From contig NW_008806276.1 of NCBI RefSeq assembly GCF_000400465.1, positions 60,001-92,000 of the forward strand: a stretch of 32,000 bases of DNA. Reading direction: 5' to 3'. The translations under genes were made by a program, and so were the position numbers. Below, in pieces: positions 5,100 through 28,016 of the stretch. Origin of the DNA: Wallemia ichthyophaga EXF-994. Its lineage: Eukaryota; Fungi; Basidiomycota. The notes below the pieces were generated by a model. The model saw only the letters and a list, made by a program, of their open reading frames with translations. It ran no database searches and was not told the origin of the DNA. Position 1 is the first letter of the stretch. Every line of letters starts with the position of its first letter.

Positions 5100-5850
5100 T
5101 GTACGTGTTGTCCTGTTTCCATGTCTGTGCTTTCTATCCGTCTATCCTCTCTGGTGAGCACAAGTCCCCAGCAGCTACACATGTTAGCTGTGTATCGAGA
5201 ATAAGAATGCTACAACTTACATATATCCAATGAGCGTAGAGATGAAGCAAAACTGCTTTCGTCAGCGAATAAGATCACAACAAAGCACTCCTCACAAGAA
5301 CAGCTAAATCGAGAAGAACGTTGAGCAGGGTTGATGTAGAATTGTTCAAGGCTGGTGGTAGGAAGAATGCTGAGCTGTTTATTAGACGCCATTGAGCAGT
5401 TGAATCACCGCACCAATCAAGCCACCGAGTTGATCAACAGCAGCAGCAGCAGCAGGATCAGCATCAGCATTAACAACATTTGCAATCTCAATCATTTACA
5501 ACGTTGGCTGCTCCACTTGAAGACATCCCTTTACAAACTCAACCGACATCTCGCAGTCACATCCGGTGCTTCAGGCACCTTATCGACTGATTCTTGTGAC
5601 AGATTAAATTAGCCTGAGCTTGAGCTTGAGTTTCAAGTTGAATTAATTACGATAGAATTTACAGTAAAAGTTGAAAGTAACTTCTGTGCTCCCTCATTCA
5701 TTCAAATCCTACCCTCATAGCACCCTTTCCACTCGCTTACCATTTTTACGCCTCGTGATCTTGAGGCGCGAGACATTCAGCGGATTGATGCAGCGGCTTG
5801 AAACAACGGAGATAGCGATTTATGGAAAATTATGCTTATGGTCAGGAGGC
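5100..5850 (-). pseudogene. Degenerate remnant of a probable spliced, Leu/Ala-rich secreted-protein gene
   Basis: Intron-like elements on the minus strand (GTAAGT..GCTAAC..TAG at ~5220-5174; GTAAGC at ~5742). Fragments such as IANVVNADADPAAAAAVDQLGGLIGAVIQLLNG and STLLNVLLDLAVLVRSALL are broken by stops and frame changes. A diverged paralog lies at ~17580-18340. Confidence 0.4.
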
Positions 5851-6244
5851 GTATCAGCTAGAGTACTTCAAGACGCTTCATTCGAGTAGCTAGAGATGGA
5901 AGACAGGATTGAATGCTCATAGTGTAACTGAATCAGTGTTACATTCGGCATCCTGATCACCTATTATAAATCGTCCTTCCTGCCCTCTCCATGACTTAAT
6001 TTCACTGCTACCATCGCCCAGATGCAATCGATTATGTTGATTCTACAGCAATTAGACGCACCACGAGAAGGCCATTTTGATCTGCTTTCACTCCACTCTA
6101 CTCAAAGGATGTACCCATTTCGACACTGACAAGCTCGCGTCGATATACTGCGCCTCCTTTGACGCGAAGTATCATTCCTTGGTCGAGTGTATAAATAAGG
6201 CTGTTCTTTTTCACTATCTCTCATCCCGCTTCTGCCACTTAAGT

Positions 6245-6616
6245 ATGAAGTTTCCAGTCACTTTAGTTCTATTAGTCGCTGTTCTTTGTTGTCTTGTCGA
6301 AGCAGCCAAGCGCCGGGGGTACAATAGAGGCATCCTCGACAAGAAAGGTATGATGCAAAAGAGAGGTATCCTCGGTAAGAAGGAATTTGGCAAGAGATAC
6401 ATCCTCGATAAGAGCGAATACGTCAAGAGAGGCGGATTGACTGATATCCTGGACAAGAGAGATATCTACCGCAGACAAGAAAATAATTACGACTTCGACG
6501 AACTGACAGACATGAAGAGGGGTATCCTCAGTCGTCAAGATAACGATGACCTCGAGGAACTTTCAGCCATCAAGAGAGAGATTCTCAAGCGTCAAGATGA
6601 TGAAACGCTCGAATGA
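6245..6616 (+). CDS. Secreted Kex2-type repeat precursor (KEP-like), 123 aa
   Basis: ATG at 6245 gives signal peptide MKFPVTLVLLVAVLCCLVEA, followed by 8 KR sites separating short related segments (GILDK, GILGK, YILDK, DILDK, GILSR, EILKR). Confidence 0.8.
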   Translation: MKFPVTLVLLVAVLCCLVEAAKRRGYNRGILDKKGMMQKRGILGKKEFGKRYILDKSEYVKRGGLTDILDKRDIYRRQENNYDFDELTDMKRGILSRQDNDDLEELSAIKREILKRQDDETLE

Positions 6617-6801
6617 CTAGCTATTGGGTAAATATCAGGTCCACTCGCCATATTTTTAATATGATTCTCTGAATTCACGATTGTATGTTTTAGAAATAAA
6701 TGTTGTTTACTGTAATTAATGAAAGACATTAAAGATATCAGAGGGGTATATAAATAATCTAAAAGAGTGCAATAGCACTGACCGGACTCGCCTTGAAGGC
6801 G

Positions 6802-7119
6802 TCAGTACGAGAGCGAGTATTGATTAGTGTGTTTGAAATCATAGACCATTACGCTGAGCTCGTAGATGTAGTCGTTGAGGTCGTCGCGCTCCTGCTTCAA
6901 TTGCTTGTTGAAACTTCTCAAGTACTCAACTTCAGCTTTCAAGGAGGATTGCAAGCGTTGACGTTCGCCGTGCCGAGTATTGCAGCAGAGATGCAGAGAC
7001 TCCGCCTCATTCTTAGTAATTTCTGAGCCAGAGACATCGCGTACAATGTCTATTCCTGTTAGCAAGTGCTGATATAGATCACAATCAATCGTCTTACTTT
7101 TCTCGCTTTTTTGGATCAT
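6802..7119 (-). CDS. Hypothetical ~105-aa protein with C-terminal coiled coil
   Basis: ATG-initiated ORF containing LQSSLKAEVEYLRSFNKQLKQERDDLNDYIYEL. A 3' intron (GTAATG..ACTGAC..AAG) may extend it to a TAG at ~6759. Confidence 0.5.
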   Translation of the reverse strand: MIQKSEKSKTIDCDLYQHLLTGIDIVRDVSGSEITKNEAESLHLCCNTRHGERQRLQSSLKAEVEYLRSFNKQLKQERDDLNDYIYELSVMVYDFKHTNQYSLSY

Positions 7120-7363
7120 TTATGCAGTGAGGATATAAGAGGAGAAGAAACTGAGTAGACTCTGCACGGACTGCGTGGTCCCGCTCGGAATCCGCTCATA
7201 CGAATCTAGGGTGGTGAAAATCCGTGCCTGGAAACATCACAAGTATGTTTCCGGTAACAGTCGATGTTAAGCCTTCCTCAAACACTTGCAGATAAATGTT
7301 CAAGTAATATTGCGTGTATTATCTATCAACATCTCTATCAAGCTACTTATTACGAAGACATGA

Positions 7364-7704
7364 TCAGCTATCCTGCCTCTCGAGCTCATCTAGTACCTTG
7401 TACGCTCCCTTCTCTTCCAATGCCTTGATGAAAAGGATCCGTGCCATCTCGTCGTCCCCGAAGCGATGGAGCTTAAGCACCTCATTTCGGTAGTCAGGCC
7501 TAACTCCGAAAAGAGCGTGTGCAGCTGTATCCGTATCCAGCGAGAAGTTTGCGTTTGAGTGGGAGCGTGAATAACTACCAAAAGCACTCTTGATGTCGAG
7601 CATGTCAGGTTGATCTTCTTCGATAGCAAAATTAAACTTACAGATACCGGAGCAGCAAGCACAGAGCCTAAAACTATCCCAGTAAAGGCTGCTGCAAGCT
7701 TCAT
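7364..7704 (-). CDS. Small secreted protein, 95 aa, 2 exons
   Basis: Exon 7704-7642 encodes MKLAAAFTGIVLGSVLAAPVS (signal peptide). A 53-nt intron at 7641-7589 (GTAAGT..CTGAC..AAG) follows, then exon 7588-7364 SAFGSYSRSHSNANF...DELERQDS*. The splice joins two ORF-track frames in phase 0. Confidence 0.78.
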
Positions 7705-7906
7705 GAGTTGAAGATGTGGCGGATGTAAGTTCTCGCTGAGCAAAAGCTCCCGAGGGGGAAGCTTTCGGGTAAAAGCATACGCTAGCTCTTCTAATAATTT
7801 TAAATGATGATGTCATTTAATAATTAGGAGCATAAAGAGTCGTAAATGGCTATCATTGTATTATCGTAAATATTGGCACATTTCAATTACATCAAAGAAT
7901 CAAATA

Positions 7907-8506
7907 TTATCCCCCGCATGTTCCGTGAATAAGGAATCTCGAAAACCCTTCAATGTTTGACCTACCTTCGAGAAATAACTGGCTACCTCCGCAGGGAGTT
8001 TTGCTCCAATTAATAGTCTTATCTGAGTGATGATTAAGCACGGCATATCCATGCCAACTATCGTCAAAGTTTTGCTTTATACATTTAGTAGATTCCTTCG
8101 GTTTCTCGTTTGTTAATTTTTGGTTCATCGCACTTGATATCTTTTCCAAATGTGGATACTTGGTACATGAATTTTCGACGTGGAATTTGTAAGTGTTGTC
8201 TGATATTGCCGTTTCAATCACATTACATCTATATGTATACCAATCATAGATGGCAATGCCACTGTCATACGCAGCTCTCAGACCAAATGACAAGATTCCG
8301 ATAGAGAACCAGATTGGAACCTGATGCGTTGGAGAGCTATTGACAGGCAAATATTTAGGAAAAACCACGCGCATACTTTGAGATATAGAGTAAAAAATAG
8401 AAACATTTTCGAATGTCAAGCATTCATTATGAATGAAGTAGTTAGTGATAAGCTTGAGAAATAATGCTGCGCAATTGATGGCTATGACTTTGTGAATCGT
8501 TACCAT
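7907..8506 (-). CDS. Cys-containing CSS2-like / killer-toxin-like protein, copy A (199 aa)
   Basis: Hydrophobic N-terminus and internal helix, then C-x19-C..EKISSAM..KCIKQNFDDSWHGYAVL..PCGG. This resembles from memory the C..C..C-x7-WxGY..CG pattern of fungal CSS2-type domains. Not verified by search. Confidence 0.5.
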   Translation of the reverse strand: MVTIHKVIAINCAALFLKLITNYFIHNECLTFENVSIFYSISQSMRVVFPKYLPVNSSPTHQVPIWFSIGILSFGLRAAYDSGIAIYDWYTYRCNVIETAISDNTYKFHVENSCTKYPHLEKISSAMNQKLTNEKPKESTKCIKQNFDDSWHGYAVLNHHSDKTINWSKTPCGGSQLFLEGRSNIEGFSRFLIHGTCGG

Positions 8507-8938
8507 ATGATGAGAGTTGAGAGGATAGGACGCGACAGTGGATAGGCTGCTCGAAAGATTTCAATAATGATAACATTTCGTCTTTGACATTAATTCTGAT
8601 TACTTACTGAACACCCACTTCCAACTCCCAAACCTCTAGATGAGACGCTTCAATTTTAAACTTAGAATTCCATAAACCGTAATTGTTTATTCAATTTACT
8701 TGAAGCTCCTCCGGCTGAAACTTTGTGTCATTTTGTCTACGACAACAGGAAACGCCCAATATTGAGACAATGACGCATTAAAGTACACGCCTTTTTATTT
8801 GTTTACAAGCTTCAGCCGAATCACTTGGCAGTTTCATTAAATGACGAGATGTGATGATAGAAGTGAGAAACATCAGCCCAGCTGGCTTTATAAGAAGCGC
8901 TATATCTTTCTTTCTTCTTCACAACTAAGAAAATTGAA

Positions 8939-9659
8939 ATGTACTTCAACAACGTCAAAGCTCTCGCCGTTCTCGCCTTTACTAGCGCCATCGTATTAGT
9001 AGCCGCTGCACCTAACCCAGCTGGCAACATCTCGTATCGCGGAGATGTAGGAGATGTCGGTCACAAGAATGAAAACTCTGAAAAGGGTGTGGATGCCAAG
9101 AACAACGATAATTACGACAAATACGATAAGCAAGACAAGGAATCTCACGAAGAGGCGCTCAAGAAGCACAGCAAAGAGGTCGAAAAGCAGAAAATGCTGA
9201 CGAAAGAAGCTGCCGAAAAGAACAAAGCAAATGACAAGGTTGGTAATGACGAAGCTTGCTGAAAATTGGCTTACACAGTAATAGAACCAGAAGACAGACG
9301 AGTACTGGAAGGGTGAGAAGAAAGATGACAACACGTACGACAACAAGTCTGGTAATAAGAAGCAAGACAATCAGTACGACACCAGTAAGAAACAAGATTC
9401 TGGCAAGCACGATACCGACATGAAACAAGAGCACTACAACGACAAAAAGCAAGACAATCACTACGACACCAGTAAGAAACAAGATTCTGGCAAGCACGAT
9501 ACCGACATGAAACAAGAGCACTACAACGACAAAAAGCAAGACAATCACTACGACACCAGTAAGAAACAAGATTCTGGCAAGCACGATACCGACATGAAAC
9601 AAGAACACGACAACGACAAGAAGCAAGACAATCATTACGATACCGACAAGAAAGACTAA
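8939..9659 (+). CDS. Secreted K/D/H-rich repeat protein, copy A (224 aa; 2 full 29-aa repeats), 2 exons
   Basis: Signal peptide MYFNNVKALAVLAFTSAIVLVAA. A phase-0 intron at 9239-9284 (GTTGGT..TAG) joins ...KANDK to NQKTDEYWKGEKKDD..., in frame with the MKQEHYNDKKQDNHYDTSKKQDSGKHDTD repeats. Confidence 0.82.
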
Positions 9660-10010
9660 GCTTCGATTGTTTGTTAAGCTTATTGTACACTGTGTTCATG
9701 AATGATTCTATCATTGAACAAAGATATTAATTTTGAGTATTCAGCAAGGTGCTTTGTTCTTTACCCCGATAGGGCCTCTCGCTTATCAAGCTATTCCAAA
9801 AATAAAATCTTACTTATCCCAGCTGAGTTTGAACCCTTCAAGTTTGTCTCCTTTGTTCCACACTCTCACTACCGTAATTGATCCCTAAATCCGTCTTATC
9901 CACCTTATTTAACACAAGATACTTGACATGGACAAGCGAGATATCTAAGCGACCGTGACTATCTACCTATACAGTAATTCAAGACCACATCTAGCTCAAA
10001 TAACATCGGG

Positions 10011-11201
10011 ATGAAGTTGGAATTAGTCGCGATAGCTGCAATTATTCAGTTTGTCTTAGCGAAAGAGCCCTGGGATGACTTTAAGCATATCAAGGCATCG
10101 TTATTTGCTAATATAGTCACTTTTCACATTAAGAACACCATCATTGCTTGACGGACAAAAGTCAGAATTTTGATATTGCTGTTAATGGTATACCTTTTGA
10201 TACAAGCGTGTCATACTGAACAGGGGCCAGATTCGGACCGAATAGTGAGCCAATTCCCAAGCTCGAATATATTGCTGATTTGCTTAGGCATTAGTCAGGG
10301 ATCACGTCACCAAGACCCAGCAAATGCATGGTCGCACTTCTGGGAGGCCAACCCTTACGCGAAAGGGGTCAAAATTTTAGACTGTGGGGATATTCCAGTG
10401 ATTACAGTAGACAACCAGATGTCATAAAAAAGCACCGAAGCTGCGCACGACAATCTTCTCAATCGACCAACTGCAAGTAAGCATCTAAAGCATCCAATGC
10501 TACTCACATTTGGAGGTGACCACTCAATTGAGTTGCCAATTCTGCGTACTCTAAAAAAGGCGCGTAATCCGCGCTATTCATCGAAGTACATTTCCCGACA
10601 CTCATCTCTAGGTACACGGTCCTATATCGCTTATTCAGATCGACTCTCATATCGATACATGGTCTTCAGGCAAAAAGTATGGGTTCAGTGATAAGCACGA
10701 CACAGCACCTGTCTCTCATGGCAACATGCTTTGGCATGCGTCGGAGGAAAATTTGCTTACCTCGAGATCGATCCAAGCTGGAATAAGGACGCGTTTTACA
10801 AAAGAAAGGGATATTACAGATAATAAAGAGTTTGGTATAAAAATGATCACGATCGATGCTATAGATGAAATCGGTGCAAAGGGAATTGCAGATCAAATTA
10901 GAAAAAGGGTCGGCAATACGGCAGCCTATTTGACAATTGATATAGACTCAGTTGATCCTGCCTTTGCCGGCGCCACTGGAACACCCGAGCCTGGTGGGCT
11001 TACCACGCGCGAAGCCAAGACTATTTTAAGGAATCTGAAGGGTTTAAATTTTGTTGGGGCAGATATAGTCGAAGTTATTCACCATATGACGCTGGAAGTG
11101 AGCTAAGACAGATGGTCGCGGCTGATGTGGCACATGAAATTCTTCAATTACTGACTACGTCACCAATTATGGAATCCAGCGTAATTCACGATGAGTTGTG
11201 A
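10011..11201 (+). pseudogene. Agmatinase/ureohydrolase-family pseudogene with signal peptide and C-terminal HDEL, copy A
   Basis: Motifs FDIAVNGIPFDTSVSY*TGARFGP, GGDHSI, DSHIDTW and DIDSVDPAFAGATGTPEPGG. Lesions: -1 frameshift at ~10124, TAA 10130, TGA 10217, TAA 10425, GC donor at 10560, -1 frameshift at ~11080. The restored end reads ...SSVIHDEL*. Confidence 0.88.
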
Positions 11202-11638
11202 ATGCATTTAAATAAGCTTTCACTAATGATTTACGCTTCTAAAGGTCTCTTTTCGTATTTATTACATCACATAGCTAAGAAATGCACATCGATGCCCATA
11301 TTTTGCCACTTATACGACTTCCTACGAGCTTGTATGTCAAAAACAAGCAATCTAAATGCTGCTAAATTCAACACTTTCTATTCTCCATTTATTCAATGTC
11401 ATATATGGAACTATCACCAGGAACTCACCAGGAATTCACCGATTAGGAAGGAAGATAAAGATATCTAGGCACTTCATTATCAAACCTACATGCAAGAATA
11501 CTATCGCTTAATTTCCGTCGCTTAATTGACCTTCACATGATTTATTGACCAGAACATACAGTTGATAAGATGTCTGATAAGGCGTCGATAAGGATGAGGA
11601 TAAGTAGGGTCGTTTTTTCAATAACTCTTCTTTCACCA

Positions 11639-13598
11639 ATGAATAAAGAAGAAAAAAGGAGCCTTCCATAAACTCAGCGTGTTTTTTTTTTTTTAACAAT
11701 GCCGAGCCGGAGTCTTCAACAAAAAGGGGCTCTCATACCAGCCGAAATCTGAATAGACGTCATATCCAAATTTACGGAATAGGTGGTGTGAGTTGAAAGA
11801 GAAAGGAAAGGATTGATTGCTGATCTAAAAAGGTTATTGGGACGGCGGTGATTGTCACACTAGGAGAACAGAACACAGAAGCAGGTGTGTTTGTCTCGCG
11901 TAAAAATAAAACCACTCAAAACTCACAGGACCGCTATTCTTGTTGCTGGCTTATACCTTCTGGAGCTGCATAATCTACATCGTGAATTAATGTGTAGCAG
12001 TGCCCACTTGTCGTCTACCAGTAGAGAATGATGCATTTGTGGATTTCGCTGGTAATTATATATCACCAGCGTTTGGTGTGTCTATTGGGTACAATTACTT
12101 TTTGTGCATGGTGAGAGCTATTGATTGAAGTGTAATCACGTAACAACATCTTCAGATAGGTCTTCTCTGCTTTGAAATTACAAACTTCGGAAACGCTATC
12201 AACTACTGGACCACAGAGCCATTACACCCGGCTATAATGGTATCTGCGAGTATTGCAGCTTATGTCCTCATACACTCATGGGACTCGAGATGGTTCGGGG
12301 AGTCAGAGTTTGTGGGTTAGTTTGGAGATATTGCTTATTTTCTAAAAGCTATGCAGTGGATCGTTATCTTGAAACTCTTATTGCTGGTAATGTGTGTATT
12401 GTATACTTTAGTCACTATGTGCGGCGGAAATCCCCTCAATGGCGCTTATGGATTCAGATATTGGCGCGACCCTGGTCCAATAGTGGGTAATACAGCTTTA
12501 ACGCAACTGCAGGCGTTTCTAGCAGCGCTTTTGGTGCCTCATTTGCCGTCGCAGGACCAGACATGCTCTCAATAATCTCTGGAGAAGCTAGAGATCCTCG
12601 TAGAGTGATGCCGATCGCATTCAGAACAGTATTTGTTTGGTTGTTTGTGTTCTTCATCCTTTCAACACTCGCTGTTGGTATTGTTATATCTTCAGAGGAT
12701 AAAATTTTACTCAACTCCATCAAGAACAACGGAGCTGGAGCTGCCCAATCACCTTACGGAGCTAGCATGATGAGGCTGAAGATCAAAAGGCTTCCTCATC
12801 TAGTTAACGCCTCGATTACTACTAGCATTTTTAGTGCTGGATCAGCATTCTTTTTCAATTCATTACGTACACTGCACGGCTTGGCTGTTCAAGGGTTTGG
12901 CCCAGTTATCTTTAAACGTGTAAATAGAAATGGTGTTCCCTACGCAACGATTTTTGTTACAACGGCTTTCGCCTGCTTGAGCTACTTGAAAATTGGTAAT
13001 GGTAGCTCGAAGGTCCTCGATTGGTTCATTGGTGAGCGTCAGAAACACAAAGCTATTTCAACTGCTGACATGAGATCAAGGTATCTCTACCGCTGCGCAA
13101 CTGATCACTTGATGCGTTATTTGTGTAACATATTTGCGCTGGGAGAAGGCGATGAAGGTGCAAAGTTTGTGGGAGACTGAAAATTTAAATTATCGCTCTA
13201 AGCTCATGCCTTATGGTGCTTGGTGAGTTTACTGAGTCTTTGTCGTACCGGTAAGCTGACGTAGCCGAGGTTTGCTCTATTTTGCGCAACGGCAGTGACG
13301 TTAATAAACGGCTATACGGTTTTCTAGATGGAAACTGGGATATTGCTGACTTGTGTGTTGGAATTTGGAATTCTTGCCAAACTAATACCACATCAGCTTC
13401 TTTACTTACTTCTCACCGATATGCTTCGTGGTGCTTGGTGTTGGATATAGTGTGATCAAGAAAGAGGGGCTGGTTAGTCCTGACAAGGCAGACTTTTTCA
13501 CCGAGATGAAGGAGATCGACGAACACGAGAATTCACTGCTTGCACAAGAGGAGGAGAAACCTTTTTCAGCGAAGAAGGCTATTAATTGGATTCTTTAG
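11639..13598 (+). pseudogene. Amino-acid/polyamine permease (YAT/APC family, Agp2-like) pseudogene
   Basis: Motifs LNRRHIQIYGIGG|VIGT, WFGESEF|W, TMCGGNP..GFRYWRDPG, GEARDPRR and NRNGVPY. Lesions: frame break after ATG 11639, TAA 11988, frameshift ~12530, TGA 13110 (where W is expected), frameshift ~13323. Confidence 0.85.
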
Positions 13599-17579: not shown

Positions 17580-18340
17580 TGTAAGCATAATCCTGGTGCT
17601 TTTTCTATGTCCGTGCTTTCTATCTGCCTATTCTCTCTGATAAGCAGAAGTCCCCACCAGCTGAACATGATGTTAGCCGTTAATCAAGCATGACAATGCT
17701 GCCACTCACATATATGCAATGATTGTAGAGATGAAGCAAAACTGCTTTTATCAGCGAATCAGAATGATTTCATCGAAGCACTCCTCACAAGAACAGCCAA
17801 ATCGAGAAGAACGTTGAGTAGAGTTGATGTGGAGATGTTTCCGATGAGAAGGGCGGTAAAGGTTGATGGGAGGAAGGTTGCTGAGCTGTTTATTAAACGC
17901 CATTGAGCAGTTAAATCAGCGCACCAATCAAGCCCTCGAGTAAATTAACACGATTTTCGAACATTAAAAAGTTAGATGCTGCACTTCAAGACATATCTTA
18001 CAAGTCGCAGTCATAGCCGGTGCTTCAGGCACCTTATCAACTCTTGTGATTACCTAAAATAGCTTGAGCTTGAATCGAGTTTATATTATGCCTTTAGTTA
18101 TAGAAGAAGTTAGTAAATACTCCTTCACATATTTATAGATACAACTTCTACTCTCAAACCACTACTAAACACTAGCTTACCATTTTCCGCCTCGTGACCT
18201 TGAGGTGCGAGACATTCAGCGGATTGATGGAGCGTCTTGAAACAACGGCGAGAAAGCGGGATATTCATGTTCATAGGTACGGTTATTCCCCGTATTAGTT
18301 AGAGCGCTTCAAGGCGCTTCATACGAGGGGCTAGAGATGG
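17580..18340 (-). pseudogene. Diverged paralog of the 5100-5850 remnant
   Basis: Shared blocks such as gaagcaaaactgcttt, ctcctcacaagaacagc, ccggtgcttcaggcaccttatc and gagacattcagcggattgatg, with many substitutions and indels. Contains stops (e.g. att taa ctg where the other copy has att caa ctg). Confidence 0.45.
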
Positions 18341-18828
18341 AAGACGGGATCCTCATACTATACTCGACGTTCTGTTGCTATTCTGTTCACCTCTCATACA
18401 TCAATGCAGCCATAATTTATAATTTAGGAGTGTTTCACAACCTCTTTTATACAATATACGCTCACTTCAGCGCAAAGGATCTTTACAGCTGCATGACTAC
18501 CATTCAAATGTATACTCAACACTTTCGGAAGTTCAGAGAGTGTAATACTTTGCTTGTGCCTCATTTCCTGCCTATGATGTCAATTTCACTGCTACTATCG
18601 CCCAGATGCAATCGATTATGTTGATTCTACACCAATTAGACGCACCACGAGAAGGCCATTTTGATCTGCTTTCACTCCACTCTACTCAAAGGATGTGCCT
18701 ATTTCGACACTGACAAGCTCGCGTCGATATACTGCGCCTCCTTTGACGCGAAGTATCATTCCTTGGTCGAGTGTATAAATAAGGCTGTTCTTTTTCACTA
18801 TCTCTCATCCCGCTTCTGCCACTTAAGT

Positions 18829-19200
18829 ATGAAGTTTCCAGTCACTTTAGTTCTATTAGTCGCTGTTCTTTGTTGTCTTGTCGAAGCAGCCAAGCGCCGG
18901 GGGTACAATAGAGGCATCCTCGACAAGAAAGGTATGATGCAAAAGAGAGGTATCCTCGGTAAGAAGGAATTTGGCAAGAGATACATCCTCGATAAGAGCG
19001 AATACGTCAAGAGAGGCGGATTGACTGATATCCTGGACAAGAGAGATATCTACCGCAGACAAGAAAATAATTACGACTTCGACGAACTGACAGACATGAA
19101 GAGGGGTATCCTCAGTCGTCAAGATAACGATGACCTCGAGGAACTTTCAGCCATCAAGAGAGAGATTCTCAAGCGTCAAGATGATGAAACGCTCGAATGA
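18829..19200 (+). CDS. Secreted Kex2-type repeat precursor, copy B
   Basis: Same protein sequence as 6245-6616. Confidence 0.8.
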   Translation: MKFPVTLVLLVAVLCCLVEAAKRRGYNRGILDKKGMMQKRGILGKKEFGKRYILDKSEYVKRGGLTDILDKRDIYRRQENNYDFDELTDMKRGILSRQDNDDLEELSAIKREILKRQDDETLE

Positions 19201-19385
19201 CTAGCTATTGGGTAAATATCAGGTCCACTCGCCATATTTTTAATATGATTCTCTGAATTCACGATTGTATGTTTTAGAAATAAATGTTGTTTACTGTAAT
19301 TAATGAAAGACATTAAAGATATCAGAGGGGTATATAAATAATCTAAAAGAGTGCAATAGCACTGACCGGACTCGCCTTGAAGGCG

Positions 19386-19703
19386 TCAGTACGAGAGCGA
19401 GTATTGATTAGTGTGTTTGAAATCATAGACCATTACGCTGAGCTCGTAGATGTAGTCGTTGAGGTCGTCGCGCTCCTGCTTCAATTGCTTGTTGAAACTT
19501 CTCAAGTACTCAACTTCAGCTTTCAAGGAGGATTGCAAGCGTTGACGTTCGCCGTGCCGAGTATTGCAGCAGAGATGCAGAGACTCCGCCTCATTCTTAG
19601 TAATTTCTGAGCCAGAGACATCGCGTACAATGTCTATTCCTGTTAGCAAGTGCTGATATAGATCACAATCAATCGTCTTACTTTTCTCGCTTTTTTGGAT
19701 CAT
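19386..19703 (-). CDS. Hypothetical coiled-coil protein, copy B
   Basis: Identical to 6802-7119. Confidence 0.5.
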   Translation of the reverse strand: MIQKSEKSKTIDCDLYQHLLTGIDIVRDVSGSEITKNEAESLHLCCNTRHGERQRLQSSLKAEVEYLRSFNKQLKQERDDLNDYIYELSVMVYDFKHTNQYSLSY

Positions 19704-19947
19704 TTATGCAGTGAGGATATAAGAGGAGAAGAAACTGAGTAGACTCTGCACGGACTGCGTGGTCCCGCTCGGAATCCGCTCATACGAATCTAGGGTGGTG
19801 AAAATCCGTGCCTGGAAACATCACAAGTATGTTTCCGGTAACAGTCGATGTTAAGCCTTCCTCAAACACTTGCAGATAAATGTTCAAGTAATATTGCGTG
19901 TATTATCTATCAACATCTCTATCAAGCTACTTATTACGAAGACATGA

Positions 19948-20288
19948 TCAGCTATCCTGCCTCTCGAGCTCATCTAGTACCTTGTACGCTCCCTTCTCTT
20001 CCAATGCCTTGATGAAAAGGATCCGTGCCATCTCGTCGTCCCCGAAGCGATGGAGCTTAAGCACCTCATTTCGGTAGTCAGGCCTAACTCCGAAAAGAGC
20101 GTGTGCAGCTGTATCCGTATCCAGCGAGAAGTTTGCGTTTGAGTGGGAGCGTGAATAACTACCAAAAGCACTCTTGATGTCGAGCATGTCAGGTTGATCT
20201 TCTTCGATAGCAAAATTAAACTTACAGATACCGGAGCAGCAAGCACAGAGCCTAAAACTATCCCAGTAAAGGCTGCTGCAAGCTTCAT
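19948..20288 (-). CDS. Small secreted 95-aa protein, copy B
   Basis: Identical to 7364-7704, including the 53-nt intron. Confidence 0.78.
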
Positions 20289-20483
20289 GAGTTGAAGATG
20301 TGGCGGATGTAAGTTCTCGCTGAGCAAAAGCTCCCGAGGGGGAAGCTTTCGGGTAAAAGCATACGCTAGCTCTTCTAATAATTTTAAATGATGATGTCAT
20401 TTAATAATTAGGAGCATAAAGAGTCGTAAATGGCTATCATTGTATTATCGTAAATATTGGCACATTTCAATTACATCAAAGAA

Positions 20484-21092
20484 TCAAATATTATCCCCCG
20501 CATGTTCCGTGAAGAACTGGAATCTTGCAATCCCTTCAATATCTAGCTTACCTTCGAAAAATAACTGACTACCTCCGCAAGGACTTTTGCTCAAATCAAT
20601 AGTCTTATCTGAGTGATCATTAAGTACGGCGTATCCATGCCAACTATCGTCAAACTTTTGCTTTATACATTTAGTAGACCCCCTCGGTTTCTCGTTTGTT
20701 AACTTGTGGTTCATCGCACTTGATATCTTTTCCAAATGTGGATACTTGGTACATGAATTTTCGACGTGGAATTTGTAAGTGTTGTCTGATATTGCCGTTT
20801 CAATCACATTACATCTATATGTATACCAATCATAGATGGCAATGCCACTGTCATACGCAGCTCTCAGACCAAATGACAAGATTCCGATAGAGAACCAGAT
20901 TGGAACCTGATGCGTTGGAGAGCTATTGACAGGCAAATATTTAGGAAAAACCACGCGCATACTTTGAGATATAGAGTAAAAAATAGAAACATTTTCGAAT
21001 GTCAAGCATTCATTATGAATGAAGTAGTTAGTGATAAGCTTGAGAAATAATGCTGCGCAATTGATGGCTATGACTTTGTGAATCGTTACCAT
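20484..21092 (-). CDS. CSS2-like / killer-toxin-like protein, copy B (202 aa)
   Basis: Same N-terminal ~128 aa as copy A, with a diverged C-terminus ending FQFFTEHAGDNI. Confidence 0.5.
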   Translation of the reverse strand: MVTIHKVIAINCAALFLKLITNYFIHNECLTFENVSIFYSISQSMRVVFPKYLPVNSSPTHQVPIWFSIGILSFGLRAAYDSGIAIYDWYTYRCNVIETAISDNTYKFHVENSCTKYPHLEKISSAMNHKLTNEKPRGSTKCIKQKFDDSWHGYAVLNDHSDKTIDLSKSPCGGSQLFFEGKLDIEGIARFQFFTEHAGDNI

Positions 21093-21524
21093 ATGATGAG
21101 AGTTGAGAGGATAGGACGCGACAGTGGATAGGCTGCTCGAAAGATTTCAATAATGATAACATTTCGTCTTTGACATTAATTCTGATTACTTACTGAACAC
21201 CCACTTCCAACTCCCAAACCTCTAGATGAGACGCTTCAATTTTAAACTTAGAATTCCATAAACCGTAATTGTTTATTCAATTTACTTGAAGCTCCTCCGG
21301 CTGAAACTTTGTGTCATTTTGTCTACGACAACAGGAAACGCCCAATATTGAGACAATGACGCATTAAAGTACACGCCTTTTTATTTGTTTACAAGCTTCA
21401 GCCGAATCACTTGGCAGTTTCATTAAATGACGAGATGTGATGATAGAAGTGAGAAACATCAGCCCAGCTGGCTTTATAAGAAGCGCTATATCTTTCTTTC
21501 TTCTTCACAACTAAGAAAATTGAA

Positions 21525-22941
21525 ATGTACTTCAACAACGTCAAAGCTCTCGCCGTTCTCGCCTTTACTAGCGCCATCGTATTAGTAGCCGCTGCACCTA
21601 ACCCAGCTGGCAACATCTCGTATCGCGGAGATGTAGGAGATGTCGGTCACAAGAATGAAAACTCTGAAAAGGGTGTGGATGCCAAGAACAACGATAATTA
21701 CGACAAATACGATAAGCAAGACAAGGAATCTCACGAAGAGGCGCTCAAGAAGCACAGCAAAGAGGTCGAAAAGCAGAAAATGCTGACGAAAGAAGCTGCC
21801 GAAAAGAACAAAGCAAATGACAAGGTTGGTAATGACGAAGCTTGCTGAAAATTGGCTTACACAGTAATAGAACCAGAAGACAGACGAGTACTGGAAGGGT
21901 GAGAAGAAAGATGACAACACGTACGACAACAAGTCTGGTAATAAGAAGCAAGACAATCAGTACGACACCAGTAAGAAACAAGATTCTGGCAAGCACGATA
22001 CCGACATGAAACAAGAGCACTACAACGACAAAAAGCAAGACAATCACTACGACACCAGTAAGAAACAAGATTCTGGCAAGCACGATACCGACATGAAACA
22101 AGAGCACTACAACGACAAAAAGCAAGACAATCACTACGACACCAGTAAGAAACAAGATTCTGGCAAGCACGATACCGACATGAAACAAGAGCACTACAAC
22201 GACAAAAAGCAAGACAATCACTACGACACCAGTAAGAAACAAGATTCTGGCAAGCACGATACCGACATGAAACAAGAGCACTACAACGACAAAAAGCAAG
22301 ACAATCACTACGACACCAGTAAGAAACAAGATTCTGGCAAGCACGATACCGACATGAAACAAGAGCACTACAACGACAAAAAGCAAGACAATCACTACGA
22401 CACCAGTAAGAAACAAGATTCTGGCAAGCACGATACCGACATGAAACAAGAGCACTACAACGACAAAAAGCAAGACAATCACTACGACACCAGTAAGAAA
22501 CAAGATTCTGGCAAGCACGATACCGACATGAAACAAGAGCACTACAACGACAAAAAGCAAGACAATCACTACGACACCAGTAAGAAACAAGATTCTGGCA
22601 AGCACGATACCGACATGAAACAAGAGCACTACAACGACAAAAAGCAAGACAATCACTACGACACCAGTAAGAAACAAGATTCTGGCAAGCACGATACCGA
22701 CATGAAACAAGAGCACTACAACGACAAAAAGCAAGACAATCACTACGACACCAGTAAGAAACAAGATTCTGGCAAGCACGATACCGACATGAAACAAGAG
22801 CACTACAACGACAAAAAGCAAGACAATCACTACGACACCAGTAAGAAACAAGATTCTGGCAAGCACGATACCGACATGAAACAAGAACACGACAACGACA
22901 AGAAGCAAGACAATCATTACGATACCGACAAGAAAGACTAA
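21525..22941 (+). CDS. Secreted K/D/H-rich repeat protein, copy B (456 aa; 10 full repeats)
   Basis: Same exon 1 and intron (21825-21870) as copy A. ORF 22006-22941 is 10 x 29 aa plus a 21-aa terminal variant. Confidence 0.82.
22006..22875 (+). repeat. Coding minisatellite: 10 identical 87-bp units
   Basis: Unit atgaaacaagagcactacaacgacaaaaagcaagacaatcactacgacaccagtaagaaacaagattctggcaagcacgataccgac is repeated head-to-tail with no spacers. Confidence 0.96.
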
Positions 22942-23292
22942 GCTTCGATTGTTTGTTAAGCTTATTGTACACTGTGTTCATGAATGATTCTATCATTGAA
23001 CAAAGATATTAATTTTGAGTATTCAGCAAGGTGCTTTGTTCTTTACCCCGATAGGGCCTCTCGCTTATCAAGCTATTCCAAAAATAAAATCTTACTTATC
23101 CCAGCTGAGTTTGAACCCTTCAAGTTTGTCTCCTTTGTTCCACACTCTCACTACCGTAATTGATCCCTAAATCCGTCTTATCCACCTTATTTAACACAAG
23201 ATACTTGACATGGACAAGCGAGATATCTAAGCGACCGTGACTATCTACCTATACAGTAATTCAAGACCACATCTAGCTCAAATAACATCGGG

Positions 23293-24483
23293 ATGAAGTT
23301 GGAATTAGTCGCGATAGCTGCAATTATTCAGTTTGTCTTAGCGAAAGAGCCCTGGGATGACTTTAAGCATATCAAGGCATCGTTATTTGCTAATATAGTC
23401 ACTTTTCACATTAAGAACACCATCATTGCTTGACGGACAAAAGTCAGAATTTTGATATTGCTGTTAATGGTATACCTTTTGATACAAGCGTGTCATACTG
23501 AACAGGGGCCAGATTCGGACCGAATAGTGAGCCAATTCCCAAGCTCGAATATATTGCTGATTTGCTTAGGCATTAGTCAGGGATCACGTCACCAAGACCC
23601 AGCAAATGCATGGTCGCACTTCTGGGAGGCCAACCCTTACGCGAAAGGGGTCAAAATTTTAGACTGTGGGGATATTCCAGTGATTACAGTAGACAACCAG
23701 ATGTCATAAAAAAGCACCGAAGCTGCGCACGACAATCTTCTCAATCGACCAACTGCAAGTAAGCATCTAAAGCATCCAATGCTACTCACATTTGGAGGTG
23801 ACCACTCAATTGAGTTGCCAATTCTGCGTACTCTAAAAAAGGCGCGTAATCCGCGCTATTCATCGAAGTACATTTCCCGACACTCATCTCTAGGTACACG
23901 GTCCTATATCGCTTATTCAGATCGACTCTCATATCGATACATGGTCTTCAGGCAAAAAGTATGGGTTCAGTGATAAGCACGACACAGCACCTGTCTCTCA
24001 TGGCAACATGCTTTGGCATGCGTCGGAGGAAAATTTGCTTACCTCGAGATCGATCCAAGCTGGAATAAGGACGCGTTTTACAAAAGAAAGGGATATTACA
24101 GATAATAAAGAGTTTGGTATAAAAATGATCACGATCGATGCTATAGATGAAATCGGTGCAAAGGGAATTGCAGATCAAATTAGAAAAAGGGTCGGCAATA
24201 CGGCAGCCTATTTGACAATTGATATAGACTCAGTTGATCCTGCCTTTGCCGGCGCCACTGGAACACCCGAGCCTGGTGGGCTTACCACGCGCGAAGCCAA
24301 GACTATTTTAAGGAATCTGAAGGGTTTAAATTTTGTTGGGGCAGATATAGTCGAAGTTATTCACCATATGACGCTGGAAGTGAGCTAAGACAGATGGTCG
24401 CGGCTGATGTGGCACATGAAATTCTTCAATTACTGACTACGTCACCAATTATGGAATCCAGCGTAATTCACGATGAGTTGTGA
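23293..24483 (+). pseudogene. Agmatinase-family pseudogene, copy B
   Basis: Same sequence and same lesions as 10011-11201. Confidence 0.88.
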
Positions 24484-24920
24484 ATGCATTTAAATAAGCT
24501 TTCACTAATGATTTACGCTTCTAAAGGTCTCTTTTCGTATTTATTACATCACATAGCTAAGAAATGCACATCGATGCCCATATTTTGCCACTTATACGAC
24601 TTCCTACGAGCTTGTATGTCAAAAACAAGCAATCTAAATGCTGCTAAATTCAACACTTTCTATTCTCCATTTATTCAATGTCATATATGGAACTATCACC
24701 AGGAACTCACCAGGAATTCACCGATTAGGAAGGAAGATAAAGATATCTAGGCACTTCATTATCAAACCTACATGCAAGAATACTATCGCTTAATTTCCGT
24801 CGCTTAATTGACCTTCACATGATTTATTGACCAGAACATACAGTTGATAAGATGTCTGATAAGGCGTCGATAAGGATGAGGATAAGTAGGGTCGTTTTTT
24901 CAATAACTCTTCTTTCACCA

Positions 24921-25533
24921 ATGAATAAAGAAGAAAAAAGGAGCCTTCCATAAACTCAGCGTGTTTTTTTTTTTTTAACAATGCCGAGCCGGAGTCTTCA
25001 ACAAAAAGGGGCTCTCATACCAGCCGAAATCTGAATAGACGTCATATCCAAATTTACGGAATAGGTGGTGTGAGTTGAAAGAGAAAGGAAAGGATTGATT
25101 GCTGATCTAAAAAGGTTATTGGGACGGCGGTGATTGTCACACTAGGAGAACAGAACACAGAAGCAGGTGTGTTTGTCTCGCGTAAAAATAAAACCACTCA
25201 AAACTCACAGGACCGCTATTCTTGTTGCTGGCTTATACCTTCTGGAGCTGCATAATCTACATCGTGAATTAATGTGTAGCAGTGCCCACTTGTCGTCTAC
25301 CAGTAGAGAATGATGCATTTGTGGATTTCGCTGGTAATTATATATCACCAGCGTTTGGTGTGTCTATTGGGTACAATTACTTTTTGTGCATGGTGAGAGC
25401 TATTGATTGAAGTGTAATCACGTAACAACATCTTCAGATAGGTCTTCTCTGCTTTGAAATTACAAACTTCGGAAACGCTATCAACTACTGGACCACAGAG
25501 CCATTACACCCGGCTATAATGGTATCTGCGAGT
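24921..25533 (+). pseudogene. 5' fragment of the permease pseudogene, truncated by the copy C junction
   Basis: Matches 11639-12251, including the premature TAA; it then switches abruptly to the antisense of the toxin-like gene. Confidence 0.85.
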
Positions 25534-26112
25534 GAACTGGAATCTTGCAATCCCTTCAATATCTAGCTTACCTTCGAAAAATAACTGACTACCTCCGCAA
25601 GGACTTTTGCTCAAATCAATAGTCTTATCTGAGTGATCATTAAGTACGGCGTATCCATGCCAACTATCGTCAAACTTTTGCTTTATACATTTAGTAGACC
25701 CCCTCGGTTTCTCGTTTGTTAACTTGTGGTTCATCGCACTTGATATCTTTTCCAAATGTGGATACTTGGTACATGAATTTTCCACGTAGAATTTGTAAGT
25801 GTTGTCTGATATTGCCGTTTCAATCACATTACATCTATATGTATACCAATCATAGATGGCAATGCCACTGTCATACGCAGCTCTCAGACCAAATGACAAG
25901 ATTCCGATAGAGAACCAGATTGGAACCTGATGCGTTGGAGAGCTATTGACAGGCAAATATTTAGGAAAAACCACGCGCATACTTTGAGATATAGAGTAAA
26001 AAATAGAAACATTTTCGAATGTCAAGCATTCATTATGAATGAAGTAGTTAGTGATAAGCTTGAGAAATAATGCTGCGCAATTGATGGCTATGACTTTGTG
26101 AATCGTTACCAT
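25504..26112 (-). CDS. CSS2-like / killer-toxin-like protein, copy C (202 aa; chimeric C-terminus)
   Basis: B-type sequence with an H-to-Y change (KFYVENS). The last residues TRRYHYSRV* are read from the antisense strand of the permease fragment. Confidence 0.5.
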   Translation of the reverse strand: MVTIHKVIAINCAALFLKLITNYFIHNECLTFENVSIFYSISQSMRVVFPKYLPVNSSPTHQVPIWFSIGILSFGLRAAYDSGIAIYDWYTYRCNVIETAISDNTYKFYVENSCTKYPHLEKISSAMNHKLTNEKPRGSTKCIKQKFDDSWHGYAVLNDHSDKTIDLSKSPCGGSQLFFEGKLDIEGIARFQFTRRYHYSRV

Positions 26113-27255
26113 ATGATGAGAGTTGAGAGGATAGGACGCGACAGTGGATAGGCTGCTCGAAAGATTTCAATAATGATAACATTTCGTCTTTGACATTAAT
26201 TCTGATTACTTACTGAACACCCACTTCCAACTCCCAAACCTCTAGATGAGACGCTTCAATTTTAAACTTAGAATTCCATAAACCGTAATTGTTTATTCAA
26301 TTTACTTGAAGCTCCTCCGGCTGAAACTTTGTGTCATTTTGTCTACGACAACAGGAAACGCCCAATATTGAGACAATGACGCATTAAAGTACACGCCTTT
26401 TTATTTGTTTACAAGCTTCAGCCGAATCACTTGGCAGTTTCATTAAATGACGAGATGTGATGATAGAAGTGAGAAACATCAGCCCAGCTGGCTTTATAAG
26501 AAGCGCTATATCTTTCTTTCTTCTTCACAACTAAGAAAATTGAAATGTACTTCAACAACGTCAAAGCTCTCGCCGTTCTCGCCTTTACTAGCGCCATCGT
26601 ATTAGTAGCCGCTGCACCTAACCCAGCTGGCAACATCTCGTATCGCGGAGATGTAGGAGATGTCGGTCACAAGAATGAAAACTCTGAAAAGGGTGTGGAT
26701 GCCAAGAACAACGATAATTACGACAAATACGATAAGCAAGACAAGGAATCTCACGAAGAGGCGCTCAAGAAGCACAGCAAAGAGGTCGAAAAGCAGAAAA
26801 TGCTGACGAAAGAAGCTGCCGAAAAGAACAAAGCAAATGACAAGGTTGGTAATGACGAAGCTTGCTGAAAATTGGCTTACACAGTAATAGAACCAGAAGA
26901 CAGACGAGTACTGGAAGGGTGAGAAGAAAGATGACAACACGTACGACAACAAGTCTGGTAATAAGAAGCAAGACAATCAGTACGACACCAGTAAGAAACA
27001 AGATTCTGGCAAGCACGATACCGACATGAAACAAGAGCACTACAACGACAAAAAGCAAGACAATCACTACGACACCAGTAAGAAACAAGATTCTGGCAAG
27101 CACGATACCGACATGAAACAAGAACACGACAACGACAAGAAGCAAGACAATCACTACGATACCGACAAGAAAGACTAAGCTTCGATTGTTTGTTAAGCTT
27201 ATTGTACACTGTGTTCATACATGATTCTATCATTGAACAAAGATATTAATTTTAG
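25534..27255. repeat. Segmental duplication copy C (matches copy B from 20514, offset +5020)
   Basis: Starts at gaactggaatcttgcaatccc, a B-type allele. Identity ends just after agatattaatttt at ~27253. Confidence 0.93.
26545..27178 (+). CDS. Secreted K/D/H-rich repeat protein, copy C (195 aa; 1 full repeat)
   Basis: Same structure as copy A but one 87-bp unit shorter; stop TAA at 27176-27178. Confidence 0.82.
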
Positions 27256-28016
27256 TATCGATAAGAACCTGCTTATCAAATAAATCTTCACATTTCCGAT
27301 GTATGAACCTCCCACCTGCGCAGTGATATCTGAGTTATCTATTCTCTAGGATGATTTGGGTGGCAGGTTTGAAGCTATTGAGTATTGCGCTAAGTCTGAG
27401 ATCAGTTTTACCATTCTGAAGCATTTGTTTGTCTGACAATCGGTGTTGATAAATCCTCGTTCATGTGAATCTCAATCCTGCGAATTAAAATCCATGCCAG
27501 TCAATGGAACGAAGGGAGCTCAGCCAACAGCTTTCTGTACACCACAAGCTGTACTTTATTATTGCAATTCCGACAGCGGGGCATTTCACCATCAACGCGC
27601 GTCTTATTATCGTTAAGCCTAACTATCACAGTCATTCTATCCAGACTCAGCTCATCAATATCACCCTTCACGAATTGGTCATGGATTAGCCCAATGAAGA
27701 ATTCTATCTCAGATATATGGCACCGATAGTGTAAAAACGGTAAAAAAATAGTCAAAAGCGAATGTTGCGCTAATGTGTATCGAAAAAGTTGCAACATTGT
27801 ATCGCATGTTATAAATCACAATCACGTTTGAGATTGTGTCAAGTGATGCCACTTTAATAGCATCAAGAATTATACATGGAAATTATGTTGGTAGAATGAA
27901 GTACAAAACGAGAATGCTCTACTTATTTTACTTAAATTTGGAAAATTTAAAATCCGAAACACTGAGACGAGGCAACCAATTTCCGAAATGGTAATCGCCG
28001 AAGGAAGACGAATAAG

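Follow-up and report, generated by a model that had tools for sequence, protein, structure and literature searches.

Among fungal secreted precursors, the KEPs (KEX2-processed repeat proteins) are proteins that, in the definition of Le Marquer et al. [quoted passage not shown] According to that paper, Wallemia ichthyophaga has six KEPs, which places it among the richest species relative to secretome size; Wallemia is singled out there among the osmotolerant KEP-rich species and is not among the fungi that the paper lists as lacking KEX2. Umemura (2020; PMC7329392) counts seven KEPs in the assembly considered here, describes 2560 of 7878 KEPs as stand-alone proteins without homologues, and reports a DUF3328 neighbour for only 6% of basidiomycete KEPs. 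Moreover, KEP-derived linear peptides have been seen by mass spectrometry in other basidiomycetes, and KEP knock-outs in Coprinopsis were without phenotype (Vogt et al. 2022; PMC9769878).

In the ascomycete alpha-factor-type pheromone precursors (MF-alpha, Ppg1, and Ccg-4), a signal peptide is followed by repeated short peptides that are freed at KR sites by Kex2 and Kex1. Basidiomycetes use CAAX lipopeptide pheromones. Ece1 of Candida albicans, from which candidalysin derives, consists of a signal peptide and a string of non-identical peptides that end in KR and are processed by Kex2 and then by Kex1. In the ustiloxin- and phomopsin-type (dikaritin) precursors, very short repeated cores lie between KR sites and share a conserved tyrosine and an E-D-Y-x-I signature. 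A basidiomycete example is Rep1 of Ustilago maydis, a secreted repeat protein that is cut by Kex2 into many peptides (PMC6339444).

The gene compared here with these systems lies in a window of 32,000 nucleotides of the W. ichthyophaga EXF-994 genome (contig NW_008806276.1, positions 60,001 to 92,000), that is, the whole stretch of DNA that was analysed; coordinates below are those of the window, and the main features are collected in Table 1. The protein, referred to as the precursor, is encoded exactly on KE007226.1 (GCA_000400465.1) at 66245-66616 and 78829-79200, and its ORF is annotated by NCBI gene models in the reference and in several W. ichthyophaga strains, the 2019 population assemblies included. 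Under a codon-usage log-odds model built from the window's sure genes, the precursor scores +0.26 bit/codon in frame and at most 0.01 in the other five frames, while the sure genes themselves score 0.12-0.23 bit/codon. The TATA-like box of copy A has a counterpart at 18774-18781. No other ORF of the window combines a hydrophobic N-terminus with multiple KR or RR pairs, and a Pfam search assigned the precursor to no family at E <= 0.01. Logan contigs that bear the gene are genomic and not transcripts, being collinear across intergenic DNA, and the precursor is absent from Table S6 of Zajc 2013, which gives the protein sequences of genes differentially expressed between 10% and 30% NaCl. Two apparent variants were discarded: a "128-aa read-through variant" (P0001, on L001-L004), for which the caller had read TGA as Trp although the DNA has the same stop as the window, and an "88-aa" variant (P0002), which is truncated at a contig end.

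Table 1. Coordinates of the precursor gene, its parts, and the duplicated blocks; positions are those of the window unless a contig is named.
Feature	Position	Strand	Remarks
Precursor gene, copy A	6245..6616	+	single exon, 123 aa, ATG at 6245, TGA at 6614-6616
TATA-like box TATAAATA	6190..6197	+	55 nt 5' of the copy A ATG; inside the duplicated block
AATAAA polyadenylation-like hexamer	6695..6700	+	79 nt 3' of the stop; suggestive only
Predicted signal peptide MKFPVTLVLLVAVLCCLVEAA, residues 1-21	6245..6307	+	hydropathy; von Heijne -3/-1 rule by eye
Basic N-terminal half of the pro-region, residues 22-72	6308..6460	+	units of about 11 aa, KR-[G/Y]IL[D/G]K[K/S]-xxx(x); 33-nt repeat
Acidic C-terminal half, residues 73-123	6461..6613	+	units of about 19 aa, KR-[D/G/E]I[Y/L]x-RQ + acidic tail; 57-nt repeat
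Precursor gene, copy B	18829..19200	+	0/372 nt differences from copy A
Segmental duplication, copy A	5998..12251		self-BLAST
Segmental duplication, copy B	18582..25533		87-nt tandem array expanded to about 13 units
Third, partial block, copy C	25534..27163		without precursor; begins at the equivalent of 7933/20514
Frameshift allele P0010	L017:15471-15824	-	117 aa, ends ...SAIKRDSLASR; also R24G and L31F

The original prediction described a signal peptide followed by eight KR sites, and both are present, as judged from the hydropathy profile and the residue positions. The predicted signal peptide has the n-region MK, a 16-residue hydrophobic core, and the c-region V-E-A-A; with Kyte-Doolittle values of 2-3, residues 1-21 are the sole hydrophobic stretch, all later windows of the profile being hydrophilic. 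Cleavage is likely to occur after A20 or A21, directly ahead of the first KR. The KR pairs occupy residues 22-23, 39-40, 50-51, 61-62, 71-72, 91-92, 110-111, and 115-116. In the mature part of 102 aa, the 13 lysines and 13 arginines are arranged as eight KR, two KK, and two RR pairs, with no RK. Eight KR pairs were reached in only one of 200,000 composition-preserving shuffles of this part (mean about 1.3; p about 5e-6), a value that overstates the significance because the units arose by internal duplication and the KR sites are not independent of one another. In silico cleavage yields 8 fragments at KR only and 11 at any dibasic pair. In particular, cleavage at KR gives RGYNRGILDKKGMMQ, GILGKKEFG, YILDKSEYV, GGLTDILD, DIYRRQENNYDFDELTDM, QENNYDFDELTDM, GILSRQDNDDLEELSAI, and QDDETLE, which reproduces exactly the eight products listed earlier; the dipeptides that follow the eight KR pairs are RG, GI, YI, GG, DI, GI, EI, and QD.

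Seven units of the precursor share the motif [K/N]-R-x-I-[L/Y]-x-[K/R]-[K/S/R/Q], which never recurred to this extent in 200,000 shuffles. It is conserved at four positions, namely R(-1), I(+1), L/Y(+2), and the basic +4; Ile and the +4 residue are invariant, and Arg at -1 is found in six of the seven units. Whole units or fragments are only about 30-55% identical to one another. At the DNA level, the repeated unit AGA-GGY-ATC-CTC-GAY-AAG noticed earlier is real and common to the units, and Tandem Repeats Finder delimits a 33-nt repeat at 6368-6430 (1.9 copies, 80% matches) and a 57-nt repeat at 6491-6598 (1.9 copies, 76% matches). The shared DNA unit and the two periods therefore point to growth by duplication of 11-aa units in the basic half and of 19-aa units in the acidic half. 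The net charge is +10 over mature residues 1-50 and -6 over the acidic half. A single KR-containing unit was duplicated, which inflates the number of KR pairs; as judged from the alignment of the units, the better argument for processing than the shuffle p would be that KR, Ile, and the +4 basic residue have remained fixed while the rest of the unit has diverged to 30-55% identity.

If the precursor follows the Kex2 route, its 21-residue signal peptide would bring the protein into the ER and would then be removed. In the late Golgi, Kex2 would cut after each of the eight Lys-Arg pairs, probably also after Arg76-Arg77, and with lower efficiency at the two Lys-Lys pairs, and the C-terminal basic residues would be trimmed by a Kex1-type carboxypeptidase, so that about 8-11 unmodified linear peptides of 3-18 residues would be secreted. 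Most of the released peptides would start with x-Ile-Leu, and the two that begin with Gln could form pyroglutamate. The repeated element may represent either an N-terminal tag of each peptide or a tri- or tetrapeptide core (GILD, GILG, YILD, DILD, DIY, GILS, and EIL). Five of these seven cores are flanked by basic residues on both sides (GILD-KK, GILG-KK, DILD-KR, DIY-RR, and EIL-KR), which makes tri- and tetrapeptides a possible alternative set of products; since the motif hugs the cleavage site and the +4 basic residue is invariant, the actual products may be shorter than those listed above (GILD, GILG, DILD, DIY, and EIL). A bolder version, to which we give a rather small chance, holds that the ultra-short x-Ile-Leu-x cores form a recently amplified, species-specific cassette that releases tri- and tetrapeptides as an extracellular signal (e.g., of density or aggregation), the acidic tails being mere spacers.

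The same charged sequence might have a role without being cut at all. A single-sequence AlphaFold2 model of the precursor (pLDDT 60.7, pTM 0.20) has no compact fold; the N-terminal half is disordered, with residues 27-60 below a pLDDT of 50, and the acidic half is helical at moderate confidence. The predicted lack of a compact fold is as expected of a precursor. The disordered N-terminal half and the long helix of the C-terminal half would also suit a small, highly charged, disordered extracellular or cell-wall protein of the hydrophilin-like kind, secreted uncut, whose KR pairs simply belong to a charged unit that was duplicated. K, R, D, and E together make up half of the mature protein, and the next gene of the duplicated block also encodes a secreted, very hydrophilic, tandem-repeat protein, one without KR sites. 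LEA-type proteins have 11-mer repeats, to which the N-terminal half bears a resemblance through its period of about 11 residues, a likeness to be taken as a lead only. However, mere charge leaves the order of the basic residues (eight KR against no RK) unexplained, glycines are frequent in the 11-aa units, and hydrophobic moments are low (<=0.4) with no clear amphipathic helix, for which reason an amphipathic, membrane-active, or LEA-like reading is little supported. Moreover, the specificity of Kex2 for KR sites is established, and eight exposed KR pairs in a disordered secreted chain should be cut in a Golgi that contains kexin. A function as an uncut protein is consequently regarded as unlikely, though not negligibly so.

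Compared with the KEPs, the precursor is alike in its signal peptide, its many KR sites between short related units, and its lack of a Pfam domain, and, as with most basidiomycete KEPs, no DUF3328 gene lies beside it. With no homologue found, it falls under the stand-alone type of Umemura's survey. Set against the definition of Le Marquer et al., it has, by hydropathy and the -3/-1 rule, a signal peptide as its sole membrane segment, 8 fragments at KR or 11 at any dibasic pair where at least four are required, and repeats over 42 of 123 residues (34%) if the 6-residue motif is counted as a repeat. Repeat similarity is loose and amounts to a motif present seven times, Tandem Repeats Finder repeats of 1.9 copies each, and fragments that are about 30-55% identical, and a FIMO-based pipeline that looks for at least three similar fragments might not call the precursor. 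In contrast to the KEPs, its units are degenerate, only the 6-residue motif by the cleavage site being conserved, and they come in two lengths (11 and 19 aa) along a basic-to-acidic gradient. The earlier interpretation of the gene as a Kex2-type precursor is supported in part: all the sequence features listed for it are present, are non-random, and fit the KEP definition.

Ece1 has a similar architecture of non-identical peptides, each ending in KR; no similarity to it surfaced in a phmmer search of 1.84 billion representative proteins. Whereas the Ece1 peptides are about 30 aa long, those predicted here have 3-18 aa, are mostly acidic or neutral, and form no amphipathic helix, and nothing in the sequence suggests a membrane-damaging product. 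Like the alpha-factor-type precursors, the protein has a signal peptide and repeated short peptides that could be freed at KR, but it is without Ste13 X-Ala/X-Pro dipeptides after KR, a long pro-region, or near-identical units, and similarity to MF_alpha was found neither with Pfam at E <= 0.01 nor with phmmer, whose matches lay within the species. Because Ste13 dipeptides are absent and W. ichthyophaga has CAAX-type pheromone candidates together with STE3 at a putative MAT locus (PMC6738226), the precursor does not appear to encode an alpha-factor-like mating pheromone. Rep1 is likewise a secreted basidiomycete repeat precursor with Kex2 sites, to which no sequence similarity was found; its amphipathic peptides, which have their role at the hyphal surface, measure about 35-55 aa, in contrast to the 3-18 aa expected here.

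With the dikaritin precursors, the protein shares very short repeated cores between KR sites, but it lacks their conserved core Tyr and E-D-Y-x-I signature, and Tyr occurs only in the YILD and DIY units. It had been stated that no DUF3328 gene is visible in the window, and a Pfam scan of ORFs of at least 90 aa confirmed this. In the 55 stop-to-stop ORFs of that size in the unique parts of the window, no DUF3328 (UstYa), tyrosinase, P450, methyltransferase, or prolyl oligopeptidase domain was detected, and there was no DUF3328 among the precomputed Pfam hits of the called genes of L005-L008 and L017. Since the window has no DUF3328 gene, dikaritin-type chemistry is not supported. The neighbours recognised by Pfam are PAP2, Arf, Senescence, arginase, an amino-acid permease, a Zn2Cys6 factor, RTA1, MDM10, Rrn7, and mS41. 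A RiPP precursor whose x-I-L-x tri- or tetrapeptide cores are cyclised or otherwise modified by enzymes encoded elsewhere would account for the very short core with basic residues on both sides in five of seven units and for its formal likeness to the tetrapeptide cores of ustiloxin-type precursors. Nevertheless, such a product is considered very improbable, given that window ORFs of at least 90 aa and the called genes of the flanking loci contain no tailoring-enzyme domain and that an aromatic residue for a dikaritin cross-link is present in only two of seven cores; the low share of basidiomycete KEPs beside DUF3328 genes (6%; PMC7329392) also argues against it.

Searches for homologues led back to the species itself. 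A word-indexed search of 5.8 billion proteins returned same-species alleles only, the exhaustive phmmer search of 1.84 billion representative proteins returned only the precursor itself and one spurious repeat protein, and a scan of metagenome contigs yielded no precursor homologue. P0005 (E = 1.3e-5) was rejected as a relative; this protein, built of 57-aa repeats and lacking a signal peptide, is unrelated and was matched via a KRQ-acidic stretch. Two contigs from other Wallemia-like genomes were reached through relatives of the Senescence-domain and MDM10 genes that flank the locus. The first (L013), from a related species at about 65% nucleotide identity, has Arf-Senescence-ZnClus-RTA1 in the same order as upstream of copy B and stops about 800 nt past the last conserved stretch, short of the expected gene position; the second (L016) stops 750 nt beyond MDM10. 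By sequence comparison, and within the databases searched, the precursor is an orphan restricted to W. ichthyophaga. The description as a "new linear peptide family" is fair for an orphan sequence with no homologue outside the species, although genes of this kind are well known.

The two gene copies in the window, which had been reported as identical, are indeed so over the whole CDS (Table 1), and a further copy is found on the unplaced contig KE007282.1 (L012). Both window copies belong to a segmental duplication, with 99.0% identity by self-BLAST between 5998-9644 and 18582-22230 and 99.9% between 9357-12251 and 22639-25533. In copy A, this block carries, besides the precursor and an arginase gene, a KQD-rich tandem-repeat gene for a secreted protein, two small minus-strand ORFs, and a stretch of hypervariable sequence; an amino-acid-permease part (12563-13180) follows after the block. 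From 6117 to 7929, copies A and B are 100% identical over 1.8 kb, non-coding DNA included; it is therefore very recent duplication or gene conversion, and not selection, that explains the identical CDS, and an inference of selection from the comparison of A with B was rejected on this ground. Identity between the copies rises to 99-100% from 5998/18582 onwards, which suggests that gene conversion or renewed duplication has recently acted upon an older duplication.

Other parts of the region also differ between copies and strains. Upstream of both gene copies, 5110-5909 and 17596-18350, which include a 97-aa minus-strand gene, are only about 80% identical and thereby point to an older layer of duplication. 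A second arginase copy (ORF 24008-24388) lies in the block that ends at the equivalent of 12251 and is without the amino-acid-permease part, and at the junction 25533/25534 copy B is joined directly to the partial copy C, whose sequence is equivalent to 20514 onwards. In three contigs of other strains (L007, L008, and L017), a single-copy order of Senescence, 97-aa gene, precursor, small ORFs, repeat protein, and MDM10 is found, and arginase, permease, ZnClus, and RTA1 are missing from that layout; either the locus is structurally polymorphic or the repeat was collapsed by short-read assembly.

Further contigs of other strains begin exactly at window position 6117 (L009-L011) or in the CDS just after the polymorphic codon 24 (L018-L021). 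Short-read assemblers break contigs where paralogues diverge, and these starts therefore indicate that the precursor is multi-copy across the population. To judge from these breakpoints, a single genome probably carries both the R24 and the G24 version.

Compared over strains and copies, the CDS is less variable than the adjacent flanks, with 3 variable sites in 372 as opposed to 15 in 432 (Fisher p = 0.015). The alleles differ mostly by non-synonymous changes (R24G, L31F, G41A, and E79G, against one or two synonymous changes), and in at least four strains a frameshift allele (P0010) replaces the last 12 residues and is without the last KR, the EIL unit, and the QDDETLE unit. KR pairs are kept in all other strain alleles, with too few changes to give this observation statistical power. 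Since the variation is mostly non-synonymous and the frameshift allele is common, constraint at the protein level is not demonstrated. These polymorphisms would also suit a non-functional ORF, young and perhaps de novo, that arose in a fast-changing duplicated region, is known from ab initio annotation only, and is either not transcribed or gives an unselected product. The limitation of the orphan to one species, the abundance of other orphan ORFs and recent rearrangements in the region, and the absence of the precursor from Table S6 of Zajc 2013 would fit that explanation as well. However, a signal peptide, ordered KR pairs, and a sevenfold motif with invariant positions would be hard to obtain without selection, and the codon usage equals or exceeds that of the sure genes. 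Moreover, the CDS is less variable than its flanks, and each of the 20 or so strain contigs examined has an open ORF, the frameshift removing only the last small units. An ORF without function is held to be improbable, though not negligibly so.

Two other elements of the duplicated block deserve mention in their own right. The first is a second orphan secreted gene, present on the plus strand at 8939-9659, 21525-22941, and 26545-27262, whose product has the signal peptide MYFNNVKALAVLAFTSAIVLVAAAP followed by extremely hydrophilic 29-aa (87-nt) tandem repeats KQEHYNDKKQDNHYDTSKKQDSGKHDTDM. Copies A and C have 3 of the 29-aa units each, as against about 13 in copy B, and no Pfam family was found for this gene in the window ORF scan. 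As a hydrophilin-like extracellular repeat protein of an extreme halophile, it may outrank the precursor in interest. The second is a minus-strand ORF of 199-202 aa (7907-8506, 20484-21092, and 25504-26112) that coincides with the hypervariable stretch. Across strains and copies, 11% of the sites of this stretch vary, and 24% do so in 8305-8404, compared with 1-3% of the sites around it; the segment 7930-8120 holds 26 of the 35 differences between A and B. The ORF has a hydrophobic N-terminus, no Pfam hit, and no gene call in the NCBI models.

On balance, the evidence leans, without great assurance, towards a lineage-restricted, degenerate gene of the KEP type that would yield short linear peptides, its expression and cleavage both being predicted only. 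The precursor would be a new, or possibly already catalogued, member of the KEP class. Because there are thousands of stand-alone KEPs, the gene is one more example and leaves the picture unchanged. As a best guess, the peptides would serve as an extracellular signal or act in encounters with other microbes, and not as a mating pheromone. To our knowledge, W. ichthyophaga is the most halophilic fungus, and its genome is tiny (9.6 Mb, about 4,900 genes). If the peptides are made, they would constitute a taxon-restricted secreted set from an obligate halophile with a small secretome, of which KEPs form an unusually large share, and the gene would offer a simple test case for the function of KEPs, which is still largely obscure. 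Given that the gene is orphan, multi-copy, and freshly duplicated, it is reasonable to consider the precursor a candidate signal or competition factor specific to the species.
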